Virus record (IMG/VR): IMGVR_UViG_3300028393_000019
Location: 124,001 to 188,000 of that record
Strand: one strand, 5' to 3'
Length of the DNA stretch: 64,000 nt
Position numbers and translations under genes: made by a program. The notes under the pieces are model-generated. The model was not told the DNA's origin, did no database searches, and saw only the letters and a list, made by a program, of their open reading frames with translations. Positions 2,619-47,141 of this stretch are shown one piece after another (position 1 is the first letter of the stretch; each line of letters begins with the position of its first letter).

Positions 2619-3440
2619 ATGAAAAAGTTTTTATTTGCGCTACTGCTAGCGGCCACAAGTCTAGCACACGCCTGGGAGCAACGTGCTCCAAATCCAGTAC
2701 AAGCCTGCGCTGTTCATCAACCATACGGCTTTGCACAAACAGCACGTCAACTACAACCTATTTGCCGTCAGGCTTATCTAGTTGCATATGACGCACAGGC
2801 TAAACTACCAAACTATGTTGCTTATACACTGACTCCTCCTAATGCACTAGGTTGCGTTGCCCGTACTAATGCGTTTGCCGCAGATCAAAGTATCCAAGGC
2901 GGCGCTCGTCCGGATGACTATGCGGCCACAGGCTACGACAAAGGACACATGGCTCCAGATGGCGACCTATCATGGGATCCACAAGTAGAGTTCGAATCGT
3001 TCCTAATGACCAATATGAGCCCACAAGCTGGTAGCTTAAATCGCGGTATTTGGAAACTGTTGGAAACATCAGTACGTGGTTGGGCAGTACAGCGTAATCA
3101 AACTTACACAATTATCGCAGGCGGCATTTATGATGCTACTGACAAGAAGATCGGTAACGGTGTAGTTGTACCTCACGGTTTCTACAAGATCGTTATCAAT
3201 CAAGCTACAGGGGAAATTGCAGGTTGGGCATTTCCACACGTTGCACCATATCCTAACTTGGGTAATGATCTAACCCGTTTCCGCTTGCCAATTGTACAGA
3301 TTGAAAAAACAGCAGGAATTGACTTTAAATTTCCTAAAAACGCTAGAGAACTAGACCCAGGCAAAGAATGGCCTGTAGACTATGGAGCCCTTACCAATGC
3401 TAAACGTGCTAAATGCGGAGCCAGTGCTTCCGCCGACTGA
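2619..3440 (+). CDS. secreted DNA/RNA non-specific endonuclease (NucA/EndoG family)
   Basis: Signal peptide; GYDKGHMAP and SFLMTNMSPQ...NRGIWKLLE motifs. Confidence 0.9.
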   Translation: MKKFLFALLLAATSLAHAWEQRAPNPVQACAVHQPYGFAQTARQLQPICRQAYLVAYDAQAKLPNYVAYTLTPPNALGCVARTNAFAADQSIQGGARPDDYAATGYDKGHMAPDGDLSWDPQVEFESFLMTNMSPQAGSLNRGIWKLLETSVRGWAVQRNQTYTIIAGGIYDATDKKIGNGVVVPHGFYKIVINQATGEIAGWAFPHVAPYPNLGNDLTRFRLPIVQIEKTAGIDFKFPKNARELDPGKEWPVDYGALTNAKRAKCGASASAD

Positions 3441-3566
3441 TCCGGATAAATATCCTGTATACCCCGAAGATGATGGTACAGATCGTCCAAGAAATCCTTA
3501 TAGCCCTGTGTAAAGACACGTGGCAGGGAATCATAAGATTTGGATGCGGACTTGAAGGATTACCTT

Positions 3567-4988
3567 ATGAAAACGACAGTACTAGAAGATAAGTTATTTA
3601 AAATGCTCAAAGACAATCTTGCCGATCTATGGCAAGATGATCTGATTGCTGAAGCAGGACAAAAACCACTCCAGGAAAAATGGAGTCAGAAATACAAGAG
3701 CTCTATAAACTGTAGCCATCCTAAAGGTTTCAGTCAGAAAGCTCATTGTGCCGGCAAGAAAAAACACAATGAAGACATCACTATGGAAGCAGTATGCCCA
3801 GATTGCGGCATGTGTCAAACTCACGGCACGCTCAATGAAATCAAGAAGGGCCAAAAAGATGCCAATGGCTACACCCGATGCTGGCCGGGCAAACACGCCG
3901 AAGGCACCAAGAAGGGCAAGAATGGCGGACAGGTGCGTAAATGTGTACCAAATGAAGGTGTGGCGGAAGGCTCTGAGCTTTCTACGTCAACGCTTACTGG
4001 TGAAATTCCCACAGCAATGGGTCCTAGAAAGAGAGAACAGAGAGAATTGATAGAAAAATATGCTCTCTACAACAAAGAGCGAGACTATTTTGAATTATTC
4101 TCAGAGCTGTCAGACAAACCTATGCCTGAAATTTATAATATGAATGATTCGCATCAGTTAGCATATGAACTTTATAACTTAGGATCTCAAATTGCCAGTG
4201 ATTGGAAAAACATTGGTAATCCTACATTTAGCCGTCGTGAATATCTCATCCAAATAATGGCCGATTGGTATAATTTATTTAAAAAATCAATTCAAAAATA
4301 CAAGAGTATGGCGCAAGGTGTAGCGGAAGGCGGTCCTTACGACTTGCCCGGTAAAGATTATGACCGTGCTGGAGATGCGCCACACAAACCTTCTAGAGCA
4401 AAAAACAATCCCTATCCTTTTAGCAAAGAAGAGGATGATGATTACTTCCGTGAAATATTCCGCAAGAAGCGTGAAGCCAAGGAAAAAGATAAAGATGTAG
4501 CGGAAGATTGGAACAAGGTCAATCATCATGATCATACCAACGGACTGAGTCAAAAAGCAGTTAACAGCTATCGTCGTGAACATCCAGGTTCAAAACTCAA
4601 GACCGCAGTCACTACCAAGCCCAGCAAGTTGAAGGCAGGTAGCAAGGCAGCCAAACGTCGCAAGAGCTTTTGTGCTAGAATGGGCGGTAACAAAGGTCCA
4701 ATGAAAACCCCAAGTGGTAAACCTACTCCCAAAGCACTAGCCTTGCGCCGCTGGCATTGTGAAAGTTTGGAAGAACTGTTGGTCACAGCCAGACAACGCA
4801 TATATGAAGCAGAAGGTGAGCCAGAAGGACTCAAGCATCTTACTCCGCATCTGGCCAAAGACATATTGGATCAGATTGAAAAAGAAGGTGTACATGCCAT
4901 TGTTAAAAGTATTGAATGGGGAGATGGCGGAGCCAAAGAACTGATCAATATTATCAAGCGTGAACTAAAGAAAGTGGCCAACGATTAA
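3567..4988 (+). CDS. modular, Lys-rich putative head-packaged polyprotein
   Basis: Short basic Cys-containing modules separated by (L/I/V)xE sites including GVAEG x2 and DVAED; ATG 3567 chosen over TTG 3540. Confidence 0.7.
   Translation: MKTTVLEDKLFKMLKDNLADLWQDDLIAEAGQKPLQEKWSQKYKSSINCSHPKGFSQKAHCAGKKKHNEDITMEAVCPDCGMCQTHGTLNEIKKGQKDANGYTRCWPGKHAEGTKKGKNGGQVRKCVPNEGVAEGSELSTSTLTGEIPTAMGPRKREQRELIEKYALYNKERDYFELFSELSDKPMPEIYNMNDSHQLAYELYNLGSQIASDWKNIGNPTFSRREYLIQIMADWYNLFKKSIQKYKSMAQGVAEGGPYDLPGKDYDRAGDAPHKPSRAKNNPYPFSKEEDDDYFREIFRKKREAKEKDKDVAEDWNKVNHHDHTNGLSQKAVNSYRREHPGSKLKTAVTTKPSKLKAGSKAAKRRKSFCARMGGNKGPMKTPSGKPTPKALALRRWHCESLEELLVTARQRIYEAEGEPEGLKHLTPHLAKDILDQIEKEGVHAIVKSIEWGDGGAKELINIIKRELKKVAND
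3955..4507 (+). repeat. three copies of an AAG(G/A)TGT(G/A)GCGGAAG junction repeat
   Basis: 3955-3971 AAGGTGTGGCGGAAGGC; 4315-4331 AAGGTGTAGCGGAAGGC; 4492-4507 AAGATGTAGCGGAAGA. Confidence 0.8.
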
Positions 4989-4989
4989 A

Positions 4990-5382
4990 ATGAAAAAACT
5001 GTTACTTGCCGTTGTATTTGTTAGTCTTACCGGATGCAGTGTGATCAGCAGTATCAAAGATCAAATACCCAGCGGCTGGGATGCCAATCAAAGTCAAGTA
5101 GTCACAGACATGCAACAAATGACACGTCATATTGATTGCACAGGAGACTTGAAGACACAACTGCATTCATTGTTTATGAAAGTAGAATGGTATGATATCT
5201 ATGCCACTACTAAGAATACTCGAGACATGGCTAAATTAGATCAGGTTATGCTGACAACAATTAGAGAGTTTCAAGAAAGAGTAGACAAAGGCGCAGTTAG
5301 TGCAATTTACTGTGACATGAAGAAAAAAGTACTAATACAGCAAGCTGACGTCATTGCCAAGACGGTACAGGGGAGATTTTAA
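4990..5382 (+). CDS. lipoprotein
   Basis: MKKLLLAVVFVSLTGC lipobox. Confidence 0.75.
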   Translation: MKKLLLAVVFVSLTGCSVISSIKDQIPSGWDANQSQVVTDMQQMTRHIDCTGDLKTQLHSLFMKVEWYDIYATTKNTRDMAKLDQVMLTTIREFQERVDKGAVSAIYCDMKKKVLIQQADVIAKTVQGRF

Positions 5383-5618
5383 TGAGCGACCAACTAATAG
5401 CAGTAGCATCAAGTGGTGATCAATGGGCGGCTGAACGTGCTCAGTATGCGTTACAAATAAGTGATGCAGTTGCTAGTGGACAAATGAGCAAAGAAGAAGC
5501 TACTGAAGTTTTACAAGATATGATTGCTACTCAACAGCTACAAGAACAAGCCCAAGCTGATCAAGTCAAAGCCGCCCTGTTCTTTGGTATTACGAATCTA
5601 ATCAGTATGTACGTTTAA
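5382..5618 (+). CDS. hypothetical protein
   Basis: ORF coupled to the lipoprotein gene. Confidence 0.65.
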
Positions 5619-6804
5619 AAACATCAACTAGGGCCGAGACTAGGTCTTCAATCATTCCATCATCGTGAAACGGAGTAGGTGCAAAACGTAACCGCTCCGT
5701 TCCCACATCTACTGTGGGATAATTGATGGCCTGTACATAGATACTGTAGTCAGCTAGCAATGCATCGCTCATGGCTTTGGCTCGTTTGGCATCACCCACT
5801 AGAACAGGCACGATATGACTGGTACTACAGGTCATAACAGGTATACCAGCCACAGTTAATCTATGCTTGAGTTTGCGAGCACGTTCCTGATGCCGTTCGC
5901 GGATTTCGGGGTGATCCTTCAGCCATTTGATAGCTGCCATTGCGCCACTACAGGTCACTGGACTCATTGATGTTGTAAAGATAAAACCAGCGGCCACACT
6001 ACGGATAGCATCTGCTACAATCCGATCGCAGGCAATATAACCGCCTTGAACTCCAAAGGCCTTTCCCAAGGTTCCGTTGACTATGTCAATCTTGTGTTCA
6101 AGAGCTAGTTCTTCTACTTTGCCACCTCCTGTTGCTCCGTATAGGCCCACAGCGTGTACTTCGTCAATGTAGGTAATAGCTTTGTATTTTTCTGCCAGTT
6201 TGCATATCTCTTTGATATGCCCCACATCACCATCCATTGAGTATACTGATTCAAATACCACACAAGGCGTATTGCCCTGTGCAAAACTGATCTTGAGTTT
6301 TTGTTCTAGATCTTCCAAGTCGTTGTGTTTGAACACAACTTTTTTAGCACGACTGTGTTGTATACCCACAATGATTGAGTTGTGATTGTTGGCATCGCTG
6401 ACATATTCAATATTGGGAATGATCTTGGCCAGGGCAATCAAGGTCCATTCGTTGGCCACATAGGCTGAACTGAACAGCACAGCTTTTTCTTTCTTGTGTA
6501 GTGTGGCAATTTCGTGTTCCAAAGCCACATGATAGTGACTGGTGCCACCAATGTTGCGTGTACCACCTGACCCACTGCCTGTATGATCCAATGCAGTGTG
6601 CATGGCTTCTAGCACCACTTTGTTCTGACCCATGCCCAAATAGTCGTTTGAACACCAATTGGTTATGTTCTTGATATTATAGGGTCCGTACCAAATAGCA
6701 CTGGGAAATTTGCCTGTTTCACGCACAATATCGTTAAACACACGATATTTGCCTGACTCTTTAAGTTCTGCTACCAGCTTCTCGAAGGGTTCTTTGTTTA
6801 TCAT
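5602..6804 (-). CDS. hemA: 5-aminolevulinate synthase (C4/Shemin pathway)
   Basis: [49 protein letters not shown] (PLP lysine), GFIFTTS; ATG 6804 lies 7 nt after TAAATA. Confidence 0.95.
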
Positions 6805-6889
6805 AGTCCAGTATTTAACGATAAATAACTGGACAAACAAATATTGTGGCGTACTAGCGCATGTCATTAAATACTAGCAAGGAGAAACT

Positions 6890-8863: not shown

Positions 8864-9274
8864 ATGCTGGTCAAAGAAATACTCACCGAAGGCTTGAACA
8901 AGAAAGCAACATTTGCTATCCTGCATGACTTTGTACGATTTGCTGCCGAAGACTTGGAGCTCAAGAGCTTGCCACAGTTTGACTTTGTGTTTGACTCGAA
9001 GCAAAGTGTTGAGAACAAGAGCTTTGGTGGGTATAGGCCTGGAGCGGAACACATTACTATCACTGTAAAGCATCGTCATATCAACGATGTATGCCGTACC
9101 TTAGCACATGAGCTGGTACACTATTCACAAGATCTAAAAAGTGAACTAGAAGATGATGGTGCTGGTGCTACTGGATCGCCACAGGAAAACGAAGCTAATG
9201 CCCGTGCCGCGGTTATCATGCGCAACTGGGGCAAGAAGCATCCTGACTACTTTGATAAAGAATCAATAGAATAA
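8864..9274 (+). CDS. putative zinc metallopeptidase (HExxH)
   Basis: RTLAHELVHYSQ ... ENEANA; N-terminus MLVKEILTE. Confidence 0.7.
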   Translation: MLVKEILTEGLNKKATFAILHDFVRFAAEDLELKSLPQFDFVFDSKQSVENKSFGGYRPGAEHITITVKHRHINDVCRTLAHELVHYSQDLKSELEDDGAGATGSPQENEANARAAVIMRNWGKKHPDYFDKESIE

Positions 9275-12362: not shown

Positions 12363-13046
12363 ATGAACGCATTAGAATTCATCGATCCAAATCCTCATCA
12401 TCATGATCTCAACCCCGTCATATGGGATGACAAAGTCATGCGCCCTGAAATACAACATCAGCTACTGAAGATTGCACGGCATTTCATATCTTATCTAGAT
12501 ACCCCTAATCTCAAGCTCAAAGACGTCACACTCAGCGGCAGTTCAGCAGGATACAACTACAGCAAGTTCAGCGATATGGATCTGCATCTAGTGGTCAACT
12601 CAGAAGAAACATTTACAGCTGAAAAGAATCAATACAATTCAACTCACGACATAGAGATCAAAGATATTCCTGTAGAGCTTTACGTGCAACCAGCTAGTCA
12701 GCCTCATCACAGCGAAGGTATATACAGTGTGCTAAAAGGCCAATGGATACACGAACCTGTACACAAAGAACCCACAACAGATCCCAAAGACATAAAAAGC
12801 AAAGCTCGTAGTTATGCTCACAAGATAAACAGTGCCATGCGTAGCAAAGATTTGACCAAGTGCAAAGAAGCTATGGAATCACTCAAACGACTGCGCAAAG
12901 CAGGACTAGAATCAGGCGGCGAACAAAGCGTGGAAAATCTAGCTTTCAAACTACTCAGAGCTAGGGGACAAATTGATAAATTGCGTAAATACATAGATAA
13001 ACTAACAAGTGCTGAATTAAGCCTCGGGGAAAACAATGAAGATTAA
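12363..13046 (+). CDS. polymerase-beta-superfamily nucleotidyltransferase-like protein
   Basis: LSGS...SDMDLHLV (GS + DxD) and a third acidic residue in PVELYV. Confidence 0.7.
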   Translation: MNALEFIDPNPHHHDLNPVIWDDKVMRPEIQHQLLKIARHFISYLDTPNLKLKDVTLSGSSAGYNYSKFSDMDLHLVVNSEETFTAEKNQYNSTHDIEIKDIPVELYVQPASQPHHSEGIYSVLKGQWIHEPVHKEPTTDPKDIKSKARSYAHKINSAMRSKDLTKCKEAMESLKRLRKAGLESGGEQSVENLAFKLLRARGQIDKLRKYIDKLTSAELSLGENNED

Positions 13047-13788
13047 AGACATATTAGGTGAAGACGGAATAACAGTCCAAAGTGTAACCGGCGACAAAGC
13101 CAAGCTGTCAAACGGCACTGAAATTGATGCCAAGACACTGACACCTGACTCAGCACATCCGGGACAGCTGACCATGCCGCAAATGGATCCTGCCGCCATC
13201 AAACCGGGTGCTATGGTCAATCAAGGTGAGCAGTCAGAGGACATGGACAACGATCCCCTGGCACAGCAGTATGTTCAACAGATCAATCAATTCATGCAAC
13301 AGGCTACAGAGCCTTGGGAAAAGGCACAGTTACAAGCACGTCTAAAGGCTGTGCAAGATGGACAAGTGCCACGTTCAGCCAACGGCGGTGCAATCAAACA
13401 ACTGCCTCCACGTGAATGGGAAGCAAACCTAGCCAAAACTGCTCCGTCGACTCTAGTTCGCATGCTGGGTGTGTTTGGTACCAGTGCGTACAGCCCTGAA
13501 TATCTCAAACAACACAACATGTTGAGTCGAGGTCTTGATCACATTGGGCTTGAGGAAGCTGACCTAACTGAAAAGAAACACAAAGACACTATGGCGCAAG
13601 GCGGCAGCGACATTGGTGGCGACAATGGTGGAGACAAGGGCGATGATTTTATCGATGATGTGAAAGACAAAGGCTATGAACGTAAGAATCGTAATCCCGG
13701 ATCCGGCAATCGCGGTCCTATTTCGGGTGGTAAGTTGAAAGAAACTGATGAGCTGTACAAGTGGCTCACCATCGCTGGTCTAAAATGA
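13036..13788 (+). CDS. putative head-packaged protein
   Basis: N-terminus MKIKDILGE; C-terminal WLTIAGLK. Confidence 0.6.
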   Translation: MKIKDILGEDGITVQSVTGDKAKLSNGTEIDAKTLTPDSAHPGQLTMPQMDPAAIKPGAMVNQGEQSEDMDNDPLAQQYVQQINQFMQQATEPWEKAQLQARLKAVQDGQVPRSANGGAIKQLPPREWEANLAKTAPSTLVRMLGVFGTSAYSPEYLKQHNMLSRGLDHIGLEEADLTEKKHKDTMAQGGSDIGGDNGGDKGDDFIDDVKDKGYERKNRNPGSGNRGPISGGKLKETDELYKWLTIAGLK

Positions 13789-18893: not shown

Positions 18894-21215
18894 ATGATAA
18901 AGATTACCGTAATAAAGAGAAGTGGCAACAAGGAAGATCTAGCAGTAGAAAAATGGCAAGCCCAAGTTGCAAAAGTTTGCCAAGGTATTGCCGATGTTAG
19001 TCAATCAATGATTGAGATCAAAAGTCAGCCACACTTTTATGATGGTATCACTACAGCAGAGATCGACGGCATTACACTACGTGCCATAGTAGACCTAATC
19101 GATGTAGAATCGAATCCGGATGTAGGTCACACCAATTATCAGTATGTGGCAGGCAAACAGCGTTTGTCAATGCTACGTAAAGATGTATATGGACAATATG
19201 AGGTTCCCCACCTCTACACAATCGTCAAGAAGAATGTTGATGTAGGACTGTACACTCCGGAACTGCTGGAGTGGTACACTGAAGATGATTGGAACCGAAT
19301 GAATGACATGCTGGATCATGAAAAAGATGAACAGTATGGATATGCGGCTATTGAGCAGTTGATTGAAAAATATTTGGTACGCAATCGTGCGACAAAGGAA
19401 ATTTATGAAACTCCACAAATTAGATATATTGTGGCAGCGGCTACTGTGTTCCATAAAGAAGAACCTAACAGTGCTAGGATGCGTTATATTAAAGAGTATT
19501 ATCAAGCCGCTTCAGATGGTTTGTTTACTTTGGCTACTCCTGTGCTGGCTGGTCTTGGAACTCCTACTAAGCAATTTAGTAGTTGCGTTCTTATTCGTAG
19601 CGATGATGATTTGGATTCCATTTTTGCCTCTGGTGAAATGATGGCCAAGTATGCCAGCAAACGTGCAGGCATTGGTTTAGAAATTGGTCGATTACGTCCA
19701 CTAGGTAGTCCTATCCGTGGTGGCGAAATTATGCACACTGGCATGATCCCATTCTTAAAGAAATGGTTTGGTGATCTACGCAGTTGCAGTCAAGGAGGTA
19801 TCCGTAATGCAAGTGCTACTGTGTTTTATCCCATTTGGCATCTACAGTTTGATGATCTTATTGTTCTTAAGAATAACCAAGGAACAGAAGAAACTAGGGT
19901 TCGACATATGGACTATGGAGTGGTATTGTCTGCCTTCTTCTGGAGACGATTTCGAAATAAGGAAGCTATAACTTTCTTTGATCCCAATCAAGTACCTGAC
20001 TTGTATGAAGCGTTCTACAAGAACACGCCCCTGTTTGAAGAGTTATATGTCAAATATGAAAAGCGCAAAGATCTACGTACCAAGACTATGAGTGCCGAAG
20101 AAGTATTCAAGAGCGGAATACTAAAAGAGCGTACAGATACTGGACGTATCTATCTTGTGTTCATTGACAATGTACAGAATCAAGGACCATTCGATCCTGA
20201 ATACCACACTATCTATCAAAGTAATCTCTGTTGTGAAATACTATTACCTACTAAATCTTTCAAGCGTCTTGATGATGTGGATGGCCGTATTGCTCTTTGC
20301 ACACTCGGCTCGATCAACTGGGGAGCATTCCGCAATCCAGAAGACATGCGCCGTGCTTGCCGTATTTTACAGCGTAGTCTATGCAACATACTTGACTACC
20401 AAGATTTTCTAAGTATACAGAGCAAACTCAGCAATGATGAGATACAGCCACTAGGCATTGGTGTTACTAACCTAGCCTACTGGCACGCCAAGCGTGGCCT
20501 ACGCTATGGCGAAAAAGATGCATTGCAGGACGTTAAGAGTTGGATGGAACATCAGGCCTTTTACTTGACAGAAGCCACAGTCGAACTAGCCAAAGAACGT
20601 GGTGCTTGTCAGCATAGCTCACATACACGATACGGCAAAGGCATCTTTCCCTGGGAACTTAGAGCCAAAGGTGCTGACCAGTTGGCAAACTTTGCTCCCG
20701 AACTTGACTGGGAAACACTGCGTACCAATATGAAAGAATACGGTGTGCGCAATGCTACGCTTATGGCTATTGCTCCAGTGGAGTCTAGCAGTGTTGTTAT
20801 CAATTCAACTAATGGCATAGAAATGCCAATGAGCTTGATTAGCACTAAGGAAAGCAAAGCAGGATCGTTTACACAGGTTGTTCCCGAGTATCATAAACTC
20901 AAGAACAAGTATCAAATGATGTGGGATCAAAAGGATTGTACAGGTTATTTAAAAACTGCGGCAGTGCTAGCGGCCTATGTGGATCAGAGTATCAGTACTA
21001 ACACTTTTTATAATCCAGCACACTTTGCTGATCGTAAAGTTCCAACCACATTGATTGCCAAGAACTTGATGCAAGCACAGCTATGGGGTTTAAAGACATT
21101 CTACTACAGTTTGATCAACAAAGCAGGCAGTAAACAAATAGCAGAAGAAGCTCCCACAATGTTAGAAGCTATTGATTTTGACAACGAAGAAGATTGCGAG
21201 GCATGTAAGCTATGA
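18894..21215 (+). CDS. nrdA: class Ia ribonucleotide reductase alpha subunit with ATP cone
   Basis: VIKRSG ATP cone, QFSSCVL, SNLCCEI, KTFYY, C-terminal CEAC. Confidence 0.97.
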   Translation: MIKITVIKRSGNKEDLAVEKWQAQVAKVCQGIADVSQSMIEIKSQPHFYDGITTAEIDGITLRAIVDLIDVESNPDVGHTNYQYVAGKQRLSMLRKDVYGQYEVPHLYTIVKKNVDVGLYTPELLEWYTEDDWNRMNDMLDHEKDEQYGYAAIEQLIEKYLVRNRATKEIYETPQIRYIVAAATVFHKEEPNSARMRYIKEYYQAASDGLFTLATPVLAGLGTPTKQFSSCVLIRSDDDLDSIFASGEMMAKYASKRAGIGLEIGRLRPLGSPIRGGEIMHTGMIPFLKKWFGDLRSCSQGGIRNASATVFYPIWHLQFDDLIVLKNNQGTEETRVRHMDYGVVLSAFFWRRFRNKEAITFFDPNQVPDLYEAFYKNTPLFEELYVKYEKRKDLRTKTMSAEEVFKSGILKERTDTGRIYLVFIDNVQNQGPFDPEYHTIYQSNLCCEILLPTKSFKRLDDVDGRIALCTLGSINWGAFRNPEDMRRACRILQRSLCNILDYQDFLSIQSKLSNDEIQPLGIGVTNLAYWHAKRGLRYGEKDALQDVKSWMEHQAFYLTEATVELAKERGACQHSSHTRYGKGIFPWELRAKGADQLANFAPELDWETLRTNMKEYGVRNATLMAIAPVESSSVVINSTNGIEMPMSLISTKESKAGSFTQVVPEYHKLKNKYQMMWDQKDCTGYLKTAAVLAAYVDQSISTNTFYNPAHFADRKVPTTLIAKNLMQAQLWGLKTFYYSLINKAGSKQIAEEAPTMLEAIDFDNEEDCEACKL

Positions 21216-22312
21216 GTAAAGAACAATATAATTTAAAAACAAAGACAGACTACCTTAATCGTAAGATGTTCTTAGACCCAGCGGGCCCAGTTACTATCCA
21301 ACGATTTGAAGAAGTTAAGTACAAAAAGATTGCAGACTTTGAAGCTACTGCACGTGGCTTCTTTTGGCAACCAGAAGAGATTAGTCTAAGCAAGGACTCT
21401 AACGATTTTAAAGATGCCAGCGATGCAGTCAAGCATATTTTTACCAGTAACCTACTACGCCAAACAGCTCTTGACAGTTTGCAAGGTCGCGGCCCTACAC
21501 AAGTTTTTACACCAGTGTGCAGTTTGCCCGAAGTAGAAGCACTCATGTACAACTGGGGCTTCTTTGAAACCAACATCCACAGCAAGAGCTATAGCCATAT
21601 CATTCGTAATATCTACAATGTGCCCAAAGATGTGTTTAGCACAATACACGACACAGAAGAGATTGTGGGCATGGCCTCAAGCGTGGGAAATTATTATGAT
21701 GCATTGCATGTTATAAACTGCCGCAAAGAAGCAGGCGAAAAGATCAATGAAAAAACTCATATCAAAGCAATTTGGTTAGCATTGCATGCCAGCTATGCGT
21801 TGGAAGCATTCCGCTTCATGGTTAGTTTTGCTACAAGTCTTGCAATGGTAGAGAACAAGATCTTTATTGGCAATGGCAACATCATCAGTTTGATTCTACA
21901 AGACGAACTGCTACACAAGGGTTGGACTGCCTATTTGATCAATCAAGTGATCAAAGAAGATCCGAGATTCGCTGAAGCCAAAGCAGAATGTGAAGCAGAA
22001 GTTTATGCACTGTATGCGGATGTGATACGTGAAGAAAAGGCGTGGGCAGATTACCTGTTCAAGATGGGTCCGGTGATCGGACTTAATGCGGCTATTCTCA
22101 AAGACTTTGTTGACTATACAGCAGTTGGCGCATTAAAAGATATTGGCATCAAGTACCAATCCAATGCACCTAGGTCTACTCCTATTCCTTGGTTCAATAA
22201 ACATAGCGACACCAGCAAAAAACAAACAGCATTACAAGAAAACGAATCAACTAACTATGTGATAGGTATCATGGGTGAAGGCATTGACTACGATGAGTTG
22301 CCCGTGCTATAA
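21212..22312 (+). CDS. nrdB: class Ia ribonucleotide reductase beta subunit
   Basis: FFWQPEE, ETNIHSKSY, LEAFRFMVSF, QDELLH. Confidence 0.97.
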   Translation: MSKEQYNLKTKTDYLNRKMFLDPAGPVTIQRFEEVKYKKIADFEATARGFFWQPEEISLSKDSNDFKDASDAVKHIFTSNLLRQTALDSLQGRGPTQVFTPVCSLPEVEALMYNWGFFETNIHSKSYSHIIRNIYNVPKDVFSTIHDTEEIVGMASSVGNYYDALHVINCRKEAGEKINEKTHIKAIWLALHASYALEAFRFMVSFATSLAMVENKIFIGNGNIISLILQDELLHKGWTAYLINQVIKEDPRFAEAKAECEAEVYALYADVIREEKAWADYLFKMGPVIGLNAAILKDFVDYTAVGALKDIGIKYQSNAPRSTPIPWFNKHSDTSKKQTALQENESTNYVIGIMGEGIDYDELPVL

Positions 22313-34351: not shown

Positions 34352-35911
34352 ATGCGTGTAATTGACATTTTAAACGAATCTACTGATATTAATTCTGATT
34401 TGCAATCTATTATTCATTCTGTTGAAGATAATCCCGAAATAGCTCGTGAAGTTCTTCAGACGATTACTGATATGACAGATCAAATTGAGCAAGTCTTACA
34501 GACTGAACCAACGCCTGCAGTTAATCCCCAACTGCAACCCCAGCCCCAACAACAACCTGAACAAGAACTAGAACCTGAACTAGATCAAGAATATGATGAT
34601 GCAACAGACTCGTATCCAGGACAACCAAACGGCCCAGAACAACACCCAGAGCAACCTTTGTATGAAAATGACGATACTGCTATCTTAACACTTGAACAGG
34701 AATTAAACAAATTCAAAAAATACCATGACCTGCTGATTGCTCAAGGGTTGATTGATGACGCTAATGAATTTGCATCGGCCATAGCTAATTTAAAAAATGA
34801 AATAGACAGCAGAACAAATCCGGATGTTACTCGAGACGAAGTAGAAAAAAATATTACTGCTAGAGTAAAAAAACTTTCGCAACTGACCGATCTAAAGGTA
34901 AAAAAAGCTGTAGGTTCGGCATTGGCAACTGCATGGTTTAACGGTAAGGAACGTGGAATAGGCCATCAACTAATTTATCAATTTCTAGATGATTGTGCAG
35001 ATGACAGTACCAAGCCAATTGATTTACCTACTATAGTTGCCAATGGCGGCGATGGTACGTTGGTTCCTTCAAGCAGTCCATATTTTAATTTATTAATCGA
35101 TCTTGGTAAAATAAATCCCGGATCAGGAAACTCCGCATCTGGTCAAGGTGAATGGATGCTGGTGCTAGCGGGTAAAAATACTGAAAAGATCCATCCGGGA
35201 GACATTGGGATAGTAAGACCAGATGGACCATCTCTCAAAATCGAAGTAAAAGCATCTGATAGTCCTAAAGAAGATTATGCACAAAAAGGCGGTACAGGAG
35301 TTAGTGATTTTGTACTCAGTTGTGGGAAACTTGATGTACGCAAAGCAAAAGAGATAATGGAGTTCTGGACCAATGAGGTATTAGGACAGAGTCATGTAGT
35401 TCCTGCACTGGGCGATAAGAATATTTCAGCTCTTAATGAAACAGTCTTTATGCCAATGAATGCGAAAAGGGCTGGTAGTGTACAAAAAATGTTCAAAGAA
35501 ATGTATCTAGCTGTTGCACCAGAGCCCAGTATGCTTCAGTATATCAATAACATTGTAGAATCTATTCCTAAAAATGGCAAAATTGATTACAAAACAACCA
35601 GCGCACATGTGGCAGTACTGGCGGCTGCGCATTATCAATTAATTAACAAACACCAATCATTATTACTGTTAAATATTCCAACACTAAGTTACTCTGTTGT
35701 CAACGATCCAGCTACTATGCAGGATCTAATAGCTAGCTTAGAAGAAAATATAACTATTTCGTCTATAATTGATTTTAGACCAAACCCTAGCGCATTGGCA
35801 ACATTTAAAAAAATAATAGCCAAAGTTCCAAAAAAGAAAAAAACTGAATCAATTTCTGAACACAGACAAGCTCTTGCAGAAGTTGACAGTCTTCTCCGCA
35901 AACTATTTTAA
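34352..35911 (+). CDS. putative head-packaged protein with a PD-(D/E)XK-like domain
   Basis: MRVIDILNE start; acidic Q/P/E linker; GQGE...GDI...IEVK motif. Confidence 0.55.
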   Translation: MRVIDILNESTDINSDLQSIIHSVEDNPEIAREVLQTITDMTDQIEQVLQTEPTPAVNPQLQPQPQQQPEQELEPELDQEYDDATDSYPGQPNGPEQHPEQPLYENDDTAILTLEQELNKFKKYHDLLIAQGLIDDANEFASAIANLKNEIDSRTNPDVTRDEVEKNITARVKKLSQLTDLKVKKAVGSALATAWFNGKERGIGHQLIYQFLDDCADDSTKPIDLPTIVANGGDGTLVPSSSPYFNLLIDLGKINPGSGNSASGQGEWMLVLAGKNTEKIHPGDIGIVRPDGPSLKIEVKASDSPKEDYAQKGGTGVSDFVLSCGKLDVRKAKEIMEFWTNEVLGQSHVVPALGDKNISALNETVFMPMNAKRAGSVQKMFKEMYLAVAPEPSMLQYINNIVESIPKNGKIDYKTTSAHVAVLAAAHYQLINKHQSLLLLNIPTLSYSVVNDPATMQDLIASLEENITISSIIDFRPNPSALATFKKIIAKVPKKKKTESISEHRQALAEVDSLLRKLF

Positions 35912-46363: not shown

Positions 46364-46522
46364 TTAGGAGCCGCCAACCAGTTTATTAAATGCAGGTTGT
46401 TTGCCATCTTTACGCGGTTTAGCAGTGCCACGCAGTTGCCCGGCAATACCTGCTTTTTGCCCAACTTTTGCTCCGGCAAAATAATATTTTTTTGCTTCGT
46501 TAGTAAATTCACTTGCCCGCAT
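46364..46522 (-). CDS. 52-aa basic protein (not in ORF track)
   Basis: MRASEFTNEAKKYYFAGAKVGQKAGIAGQLRGTAKPRKDGKQPAFNKLVGGS; overlaps the upstream stop. Confidence 0.6.
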   Translation of the reverse strand: MRASEFTNEAKKYYFAGAKVGQKAGIAGQLRGTAKPRKDGKQPAFNKLVGGS

Positions 46523-47141
46523 GTTTCTTCCTACCAGCTTTCATATTGGCTAACCAATGTGCTAACTGTCCTTTGCGTCCGCCTTGCTTGGCAGTTTTGC
46601 GCAGACTACTGACACTGGCTTTGGTATTGATACCATGGCGTTTGGCATCACCTTTGTCTTGGGGATTGCGTCCGTCAGCAAAGTTTTCCGGCAACGATCC
46701 GTATGCTTGTTGTTGTTTAATCCATTGTTCCAAGGCAGCATATTCGCTTGCACTAAATTGGGGTTGTTGTCCTTTAGCGTTGGCATCTTTAATACGCTGT
46801 AAGTACATTCTTATGTGTGGCGGGGGAACTGTGTCCAAGGCAGCTTTATCTGCAGCCACAGCCGCTCGCATTGTTGATAAACTACTAGTAGGTTTTGTTG
46901 CAGTTTTGACCACAGGCTTTGACAAGAAACTCATGAGTCCTTCATCTACATCTTGTTTTTCTAGATACCGTTTGACTTTGAGTAGTTGTGCTTGATTCAA
47001 GTCGTCTAAATGTTCTTTACCCGTCAACCTTTTGGTGAGAGCAAGAAAGCTGGGCTTGTCATCCCATTTTACACCTTTGGCATCGGCCAGGGTGTGTATA
47101 TTTTTGGGAGTTAGACCTTCTAGGATTTCTTTAACTTTCAT
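46509..47141 (-). CDS. modular basic putative head-packaged protein
   Basis: MKVKEILE start; modules separated by DVDEG and LPE; TAAATA 5 nt upstream. Confidence 0.65.
   Translation of the reverse strand: MKVKEILEGLTPKNIHTLADAKGVKWDDKPSFLALTKRLTGKEHLDDLNQAQLLKVKRYLEKQDVDEGLMSFLSKPVVKTATKPTSSLSTMRAAVAADKAALDTVPPPHIRMYLQRIKDANAKGQQPQFSASEYAALEQWIKQQQAYGSLPENFADGRNPQDKGDAKRHGINTKASVSSLRKTAKQGGRKGQLAHWLANMKAGRKKHAGK

Follow-up and report, generated by a model that had tools for sequence, protein, structure and literature searches.

In-frame DNA linkers of nearly invariant sequence at the joints of a putative capsid-targeted polyprotein from a freshwater phage

Why should the borders between the segments of a phage protein be written in almost the same bases, when the segments that they join are unrelated to each other? 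The question is raised by the gene at 3567..4988 (+ strand) of a 64,000-nucleotide stretch of DNA, referred to here as the window, that corresponds to bases 124001-188000 of a virus record of IMG/VR (linear, 265,680 bp, 42% GC, 72% complete according to CheckV). The gene, which was encountered in metagenome runs from freshwater or lakes, encodes a protein of 473 amino acids (aa), P0001, and contains three copies of a short repeat. Here we show that it is a member of a very large mosaic polyprotein family in freshwater phages. We consider it probable, at roughly 0.6, that the polyprotein is targeted to the capsid and cut by the prohead protease, and that the DNA linker present at its joints is a site at which modules are exchanged.

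The three repeats, at 3955, 4315 and 4492, are all located on the + strand and in one codon phase of the open reading frame (ORF). A preliminary description of the window had taken them to delimit modules, with GCG GAA retained at each junction, and both statements hold for the codons of joints 1 to 3. When up to one mismatch is allowed, AAGRTGTRGCGGAAG has three matches in the window versus 0.01 in dinucleotide shuffles, and an exact-match scan of the whole 265,680-bp record returned these three copies only, all of them within this gene. The codon GCG accounts for 8.7% of the alanine codons genome-wide, and the joints hold three of the five GCG codons of the gene. Based on the ORF, Pfam and a map of high-scoring segment pairs (HSPs) against 119 relatives, the gene can be divided as follows (an arrow marks a proposed cut).

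3567..4988, + strand: polyprotein P0001, made up of a leader and modules A, B, B', C (DUF6321) and D
3567..3677, + strand: N-terminal leader (aa 1-37), in which [V/L/I]-x-E occurs three times, as VLE↓D at aa 5-7, IAE↓A at aa 27-29 and LQE↓K at aa 35-37
3678..3968, + strand: module A, aa 38-134, basic (isoelectric point, pI, 9.3), with 7 Cys and 5 His
3954..3971, + strand: joint 1, GAA GGT GTG GCG GAA GGC (E-G-V-A-E↓G), repeat at 3955
3969..4328, + strand: module B, aa 135-254, an AT-rich cassette of 120 codons; predicted three-helix unit with helices at 153-249 (low-confidence model)
4314..4331, + strand: joint 2, CAA GGT GTA GCG GAA GGC (Q-G-V-A-E↓G), repeat at 4315; one mismatch to the family consensus CAAGGTGTGGCGGAAG
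4329..4505, + strand: module B', aa 255-313, a module family of its own with 5 different left neighbours
4491..4508, + strand: joint 3, AAA GAT GTA GCG GAA GAT (K-D-V-A-E↓D), repeat at 4492
4506..4778, + strand: module C (DUF6321, by Pfam), aa 314-404, very basic (pI 10.6)
4779..4985, + strand: module D, aa 405-473, helical and C-terminal; HSP ends cluster at aa 398-418

In the BLASTP map the units of P0001 are the leader (1-32), A (about 35-134), B (135-254), B' (255-313), C (about 308/313-404) and D (405-473). The only Pfam match in P0001 is DUF6321 (PF19846), at aa 320-396 (57.6 bits versus a cut-off of 28.5; E 2e-15), and a search of PHROGs returned unnamed families only. Module B was also described beforehand as richer in AT than its surroundings, and indeed it has a GC content of 36.4% (30.8% at third codon positions) versus 47.9% and 44.6% in its flanks. 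Near the border between modules C and D there are two candidate sites, LEE↓L at aa 401-403 and IYE↓A at aa 412-414, and other proteins bear other tails after module C. A model of P0001 computed by AlphaFold2 from 26 aligned relatives was poor, with a predicted local distance difference test score (pLDDT) of 52.8; in it, joints 1 and 2 lie in low-confidence coil around module B. The look-alikes of modules A and B in the ESM Atlas were viral hypothetical clusters only, with scores below 0.9.

The joints are conserved at the level of the bases. We analyzed 89 GVAE joints with distinct flanks, taken from 80 IMG/VR loci that were found via peptides without the G-V-A codons. At these joints Gly is encoded by GGT in 98% of the cases (background 46%), Val by GTG in 83% (22%), Ala by GCG in 84% (8.7%) and Glu by GAA in 85% (82%); the codon in front of Gly is CAA at 62% of the joints and GAA at 26%. 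The bases from -2 to +12 are conserved at 0.83 or more, and beyond -5..+12 conservation sinks to the background level. The resulting consensus is CAAGGTGTGGCGGAAG, in linker form (C/G)AA GGT GTG GCG GAA G. Several controls behaved differently: in the strongly conserved motifs of the homologous modules A and C one residue is written with several different codons, the codons of the N-terminal leader vary, other (L/I)AE sites are written with GCA and GCT, and VAE sites that are not preceded by Gly show intermediate conservation. Thus, as the preliminary description had supposed, the synonymous positions of the joints are not free to vary. The exact 16-mer was also searched for in IMG/VR; among the matches listed (at least 120 stretches), 110 of the 112 sites in the 80 loci kept read Q-G-V-A-E in frame, and the open frames around the sites have a median of 526 codons. 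Because these loci are biased for the motif, they were kept out of the codon figures given above. Large genomes contain 1-4 copies of the 16-mer, in one or two genes.

The segments between the joints behave as units independent of each other. A word search scored more than 5,500 relatives, the best 120 of which were mapped, and P0001 was compared by BLASTP with the best 119. These best 120 relatives have sizes of 261-766 aa and are nearly all annotated as DUF6321 only, and among them the segments between repeats recur in differing orders and combinations. Modules A and C are present at 75-90% identity in scores of proteins, with A on either side of C, adjacent to it or apart from it, and with or without B, B' and D. 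The leader of P0001 starts, at 94% identity, the otherwise different proteins P0004 and P0026; module B is absent from P0005 and P0006; and module B' comes after other modules in P0013 and P0004. The HSP ends concentrate at residues 130-137 and 307-313 of P0001, which correspond to joints. To define module families, 278 non-identical proteins were cut at [G/D/S]VAE and the pieces clustered, a procedure that misses non-VAE joints. The number of joints per protein ranged from 0 to 8, and the 214 internal joint-bounded modules (25-440 aa, median 82) fell into 160 families. In the 11 cases in which module A was internal, 11 different modules stood on its left and 10 on its right. Of 148 module representatives, only about 13 had a Pfam match; these include DUF6321 and DUF6934 as well as one GNAT and one zinc finger of the DnaJ type.

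The positions at which DNA similarity between relatives starts and stops provide a second line of evidence. For 154 family ORFs we collected DNA matches with at least 85% identity and at least 150 nucleotides (nt) that end inside both sequences. Within this set there were 258 distinct match ends, 59% of which were at most 15 nt from a joint, versus 5.4% (maximum 8.5%) at random positions. The same was seen in loci syntenic with the window, which all continue with the same genes of 130 and 78 aa and then a reverse-strand gene that, where the contig is long enough, is an aminotransferase. In the locus L098 all 4,440 bases from 3955 to the contig end are identical to the window (100%), the first 1,104 bases show no similarity to the window or any other part of the 265-kb record, and the switch point is the first base of joint 1. 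In two other loci (L099 and L100) the alignment with the window breaks off after 3956 and resumes at 4503, so that 3957..4502, with B and B', is missing. Their single joint reads NESIEE↓DW in different codons; in L099 (AGC ATA GAA GAA GAT) the DNA linker is lost and the protein still reads I-E-E↓D. In P0003 the leader, A, B', C and D are kept, and an unrelated module of 58 aa takes the place of B between joints 1 and 2, as seen at the level of protein and synteny. The orthologs are, then, not collinear at the repeats, as they would be if the repeats had no part in module gain or loss.

Furthermore, Logan contigs of other runs start or stop at the joints (spans 3955-4321 and 3962-4291; starts at 3955-3962), and one contig (run X5, record 11, 3457-3984) bridges joint 1 in the arrangement of the window; run X5 was not flagged as a possible source of the window. 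The same architectures are present on several contigs from different samples and pipelines (that of P0001 on 6 and that of P0006 on at least 3), and family genes are located on contigs of up to 355 kb.

What are the joints at the protein level? The recognition pattern of gp21, the prohead protease of phage T4, is (L/I)-x-E. Taking as P1 the position two residues before the first Trp of module C, we found Glu at P1 at all 92 starts of module C and, likewise, at all 105 starts of module A (distinct contexts; 197/197). At P3, V/L/I is present in 83% of the module C starts and V/L/I/M in 94% of the module A starts, and P2 is free. This pattern holds regardless of whether the module follows the 16-mer linker, another joint (LWE↓DW, SIEE↓D or VSE↓GW) or a leader. 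Half of the mapped family proteins (60/120) start with M-[K/R]-x-x-[E/D]-[F/I/L]-[I/L]-x-E, for example MRANEFITE, and most of the others, including P0001, have a longer helical leader that also ends in a [V/L/I]-x-E-type site. The capsid-targeting sequence (CTS) of T4 is MKTYQEFIAE and is removed by gp21 (PMC8442874). The likeness between the family leaders and the T4 CTS is one of pattern and does not amount to demonstrated homology. We propose that the leader of P0001 is a capsid-targeting propeptide.

The five large related contigs that were checked belong to T4-type giant phages. Genes for Peptidase_S77 and Gp23 are located side by side on the largest related contigs (5/5), two of which are complete (353-355 kb). 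The idea that the repeat is a protease site thus receives indirect support from the P1 and P3 residues, the S77 protease of the relatives and the CTS-like leaders. In four loci of the genomes G001, G002 and G004 (L086, L090, L092 and L094) the order of the head genes is acidic core protein, S77 protease, scaffold and gp23-type capsid protein; the acidic core protein has a leader-like start, MNKFEQLIE, and YL(K/A/S)E motifs around residue 40 of the capsid proteins probably represent maturation sites.

Leaders and modules of this kind are also found elsewhere in the genome of the window, in which a short CTS-like leader is present on at least nine proteins, versus 2-5 matches at internal control offsets. 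Several stand-alone genes of this genome have homologues in other phages that form the first segment of a polyprotein. The genes concerned in the window are the following.

8864..9274, + strand: stand-alone gene, 136 aa, with a HExxH metallopeptidase-like motif and CTS-like leader MLVKEILTE↓G; its homologues in other phages are first segments of polyproteins
13036..13788, + strand: protein of 250 aa and no known function with CTS-like leader MKIKDILGE↓D (by leader pattern)
34352..35911, + strand: protein of 519 aa and no known function with CTS-like leader MRVIDILNE↓S (by leader pattern)
46509..47141, - strand: second member of the module network (by shared modules), 210 aa, with leader MKVKEILE↓G and a degenerate joint Q-D-V-D-E↓G

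One of the polyproteins that match 8864..9274 by their first segment, P0056, bears the JGI label ImmA/M78 peptidase. The related junction that had been pointed out in ORF 46509..47141 is present there as CAAGATGTAGATGAAGG, at 46939-46955 on the minus strand, and encodes Q-D-V-D-E-G (aa 63-68). The modules at aa 6-64 and aa 149-210 of this ORF recur in proteins of the DUF6321 family and are adjacent to each other in P0086; since its flanking modules are shared with that family, the ORF is part of the same module network. Three adjacent small genes that immediately precede the window (G000 121768..123317) start with MRISELLNE, MKVTELVQE and MKITELVRE, and the latter two share their first 30 residues almost exactly; the trio is a candidate cluster of leader-bearing head-internal proteins.

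DUF6321 is also found at the C-terminus of hypothetical proteins of two cultured marine cyanophages, P-TIM68 of Prochlorococcus (94975..96258) and S-SCSM2R of Synechococcus (151165..153612). The gene of P-TIM68 is located between the small and large terminase genes. The joints of these cyanophage proteins, matched by tblastn in the DUF6321 part only, read L-K-E↓DW or V-K-E↓GW and are without the freshwater 16-mer. A megablast search of the region against 50,697 cultured-phage records gave no DNA match.

Taken together, these results are most simply accounted for by the following proposed scheme, which agrees with what the preliminary description had inferred. A CTS-like N-terminal leader would take the chain into the prohead core, where a T4-type (S77) prohead protease would cut after the Glu of each [V/L/I]-x-E joint, and the cuts would release four small internal head proteins, A, B, B' and C-D. 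The freed modules would then enter the host together with the DNA, as the T4 internal proteins do. Many of the joints are written as one nearly invariant linker of 16-17 bases and, because this linker is common to unrelated modules, short-patch homologous recombination could exchange, delete or insert whole modules. The partners in such recombination would be co-infecting phages or two joints of one gene, and each exchange would stay in frame and rebuild a cleavable joint. In favour of such a process, T4-type recombination has been reported to need only small patches of homology, of less than 50 bp (PMC2839356). Identical linkers would keep exchanging, which alone would maintain the consensus, and the 10-15% of the joints with GTA or GCA, together with drifted joints such as that of L099, would represent linkers that are leaving the pool. 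We infer cleavage, packaging, injection, the effector roles and the part that recombination would have in keeping the linker invariant from the sequences described above. It should be noted that recombination at the joint may be a selected function or a mere consequence of the shared sequence.

Several observations weigh against this scheme. The case for cleavage and for presence in the virion is made from sequence, and Val at P3 is less typical of T4 gp21 than Leu or Ile. The leader of P0001 is of the long type and not the closest match to the T4 CTS, and neither Peptidase_S77 nor Gp23 was found in the 265-kb record of the window itself, which is 72% complete. Because the structural model is poor, the placement of the joints in exposed linkers is only suggestive. 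With regard to module exchange, 16-17 bp is short for efficient homologous recombination. Since the motif occurs only 1-4 times per genome, exchange must take place mostly between genomes. No dedicated recombinase was seen beside the loci, the neighbours of the other loci not having been scanned for recombinase families. In addition, any joining process that reuses the same linker would give the same breakpoints of similarity, and L098, with its clear-cut switch point, is a single metagenome contig of 5.5 kb.

Other explanations can be envisaged. On the one hand, the joints might be recombination linkers within an ordinary multidomain protein that is neither cleaved nor packaged, the [V/L/I]-x-E pattern being incidental. 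That the protease gene was not found in the record itself, that most modules have no known function and that neither cleavage nor packaging is known other than through sequence would fit such a protein. However, the Glu at P1 and the hydrophobic residue at P3 are also present where the DNA linker is absent, as at leader-type joints and at LWE↓DW, SIEE↓D and VSE↓GW; the leaders are similar to the T4 CTS; all five large relatives have T4-type protease genes; and the same modules also occur as stand-alone genes that have their own leader ending in x-E. We regard an uncleaved protein as unlikely. On the other hand, the joints might be protease sites or flexible linkers only, and owe their DNA identity to descent of the linker or to codon preference, without any role in recombination. 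There is a real protein constraint on Q-G-V-A-E, and GAA and CAA are preferred codons anyway. Yet 83-84% of the joints, whose flanks are unrelated, have the disfavoured codons GCG (background 9%) and GTG (22%), homologous motifs and leaders that are conserved under protein constraint vary synonymously, and the breakpoints pile up at the joints, with syntenic indels and replacements ending exactly there. It seems very unlikely to us that the identity of the linkers is such a by-product.

The 16-mer might also be kept for another reason related to the nucleic acid, such as a translational pause, RNA processing, a protein-binding site or a nuclease target, in which case recombination would be secondary. 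Synonymous freezing does mean constraint on the bases, and the two rare codons GTG and GCG are adjacent; a pause, however, has no need of the common codons GGT, CAA and GAA, which are frozen too. Moreover, neither side has conserved bases available for pairing with the motif or as a start, no Rfam match was found, and neither a nuclease nor a recombinase was seen as a regular neighbour. We consider this explanation, too, very unlikely. An internal ribosome-binding site or start at the motif was considered separately and is unlikely because nothing is conserved downstream of the motif; a search of Rfam with window positions 3300-5200 gave nothing significant. Finally, the mosaic architectures could be artefacts of metagenome assembly across the shared repeat. 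All relatives are metagenomic, the Logan contigs break at joints and L098 is a single contig, which would be compatible with chimeras, but the same architectures recur on several contigs (6 for P0001, at least 3 for P0006), there are long contigs of up to 355 kb, and the X5 contig bridges joint 1. The word sizes used by assemblers usually exceed a repeat of 16-17 bases. Assembly chimeras do not account for the whole pattern, and we find it hardly credible that the mosaic is their product.

How does a cleavable polyprotein with exchangeable modules compare with known systems? The internal proteins of T4 are packaged and injected, and are anti-restriction factors (PMC8442874, PMC7411985, PMC12373910, PMC3012670). 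The proteins described here resemble those of T4 (IPI-III and Alt) and of the polymorphic ip loci in T-even phages in that they start with a short leader whose last residues are [I/L]-x-E; in T4-type internal proteins this is a propeptide of about 10-20 aa, which gp21 removes in T4. In both cases unrelated small and often basic proteins share the leader only. In T4, each internal protein has a separate gene and undergoes one cleavage, whereas here up to nine modules are present in one frame with internal sites, and a subset of the sites is fixed as DNA; packaging and injection are proposed here on the basis of the genes. Modular shuffling in T4-type genomes has been attributed to linkers consisting of a promoter and a stem-loop (PeSLs) (PMC2839356, PMC4122927). 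In both cases conserved linkers flank variable cassettes in T4-type phages, indels and replacements end in the linkers, and short-patch homologous recombination is the proposed mechanism. The PeSLs, however, are intergenic and regulatory, measure about 100 bp, combine an early promoter with a stem-loop and move whole genes. The linker described here has 16-17 nt, flanked by bases that are not conserved; it is located in frame within ORFs and spells a protease site, and the units that it moves are protein modules.

The polyvalent proteins of phages and conjugative elements likewise combine many unrelated domains (2-15), are mosaic and are thought to be delivered with the DNA and processed; they contain a known set of enzymatic domains, and the processing has usually been proposed to be done by their own metallopeptidase domain (PMC5512222). 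In the family of P0001, by contrast, almost no modules are in Pfam, the prohead protease is the proposed processing enzyme and the joints are conserved as DNA. The conflict domains of polyvalent proteins (metallopeptidase, ParB-type DNase, ADP-ribosyltransferases and methylases, among others) were not found in P0001, which matches DUF6321 only, and some relatives contain a HExxH module. The family thus unites traits of the T4 internal proteins with their common leader, of PeSLs and of polyvalent proteins, without the features by which the latter two were originally defined. Integron cassettes and the precursors of cyanobactins (PatE-type) are also variable cassettes bounded by conserved recombination or recognition sequences; in the cyanobactin precursors, the protease recognition sequences that flank the hypervariable cores of 6-8 residues are conserved as DNA. 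The similarity to these two systems is one of analogy only: here no integrase or attC-like structure was seen, and the modules are protein domains of 25-440 aa. The joint motif, by direct inspection, is not palindromic. It could nevertheless be speculated that an active system similar to integrons uses the 16-base linker as its attachment site and mobilises in-frame module cassettes between co-infecting phages, possibly as mini-circles, by means of a nuclease or recombinase encoded by the phage or the host; we consider this unlikely. If it were true, the repertoire of injected proteins would turn over much more rapidly than passive homologous recombination allows. In the literature, no earlier account was found of DUF6321, of the motif, of shuffling in polyproteins or internal proteins, or of protease-site linkers that are in frame and conserved as DNA, which is not proof of novelty.

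The gene is surrounded by tail-like and virion structural genes and by genes for a secreted non-specific endonuclease, an aminotransferase and ribonucleotide reductase. The endonuclease gene (2619..3440, + strand; DNA/RNA non-specific endonuclease, PF01223, E 1e-42) is located directly 5' of the polyprotein gene, and its product has a clear N-terminal signal peptide; such a secreted nuclease is unusual for a phage. We considered it as a dedicated recombinase and rejected it: it is an Endonuclease_NS protein that bears a signal peptide, and only 7 of 160 loci have it as a neighbour. In general, the genes that flank the polyprotein gene in the window are seldom found next to its relatives elsewhere. 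Directly 3' of the polyprotein gene, in all syntenic loci, is the gene for the 130-aa protein (4990..5382, + strand), which has a lipoprotein-type signal (...LTGC...). The class I/II aminotransferase gene (5602..6867, - strand; PF00155, E 1e-63) lies on the opposite strand amid virion-associated genes and is a candidate auxiliary metabolic gene. At 18894..22312 (+ strand), the large and small subunits of ribonucleoside-diphosphate reductase are encoded (PHROG matches to aerobic NrdA/NrdB-type families). In run X6, a lake metatranscriptome library, contigs match parts of 3401..5386, that is, the polyprotein gene and its neighbours, with full identity; these matches may reflect transcription or carried-over DNA and do not prove transcription.

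Phage proteins that are injected with the DNA are the first to meet the defences of the host, and those of T4 are specific anti-restriction factors (PMC12373910). If the proposed scheme is correct, it would constitute a mechanism, readable from sequence, for the rapid diversification of the injected arsenal, in which one in-frame connector would be at the same time the cutting site that frees the modules and the patch of homology that permits any module order. As a rule for annotation, a leader combined with [V/L/I]-x-E joints, or the 16-mer, flags hundreds of small domains in abundant freshwater phages, and the domains flagged in this way (160 families in a small sample, almost none of them in Pfam) are candidates for head-packaged, host-directed functions. 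The family would also represent a natural design for modular polyprotein cargo in T4-type capsids.

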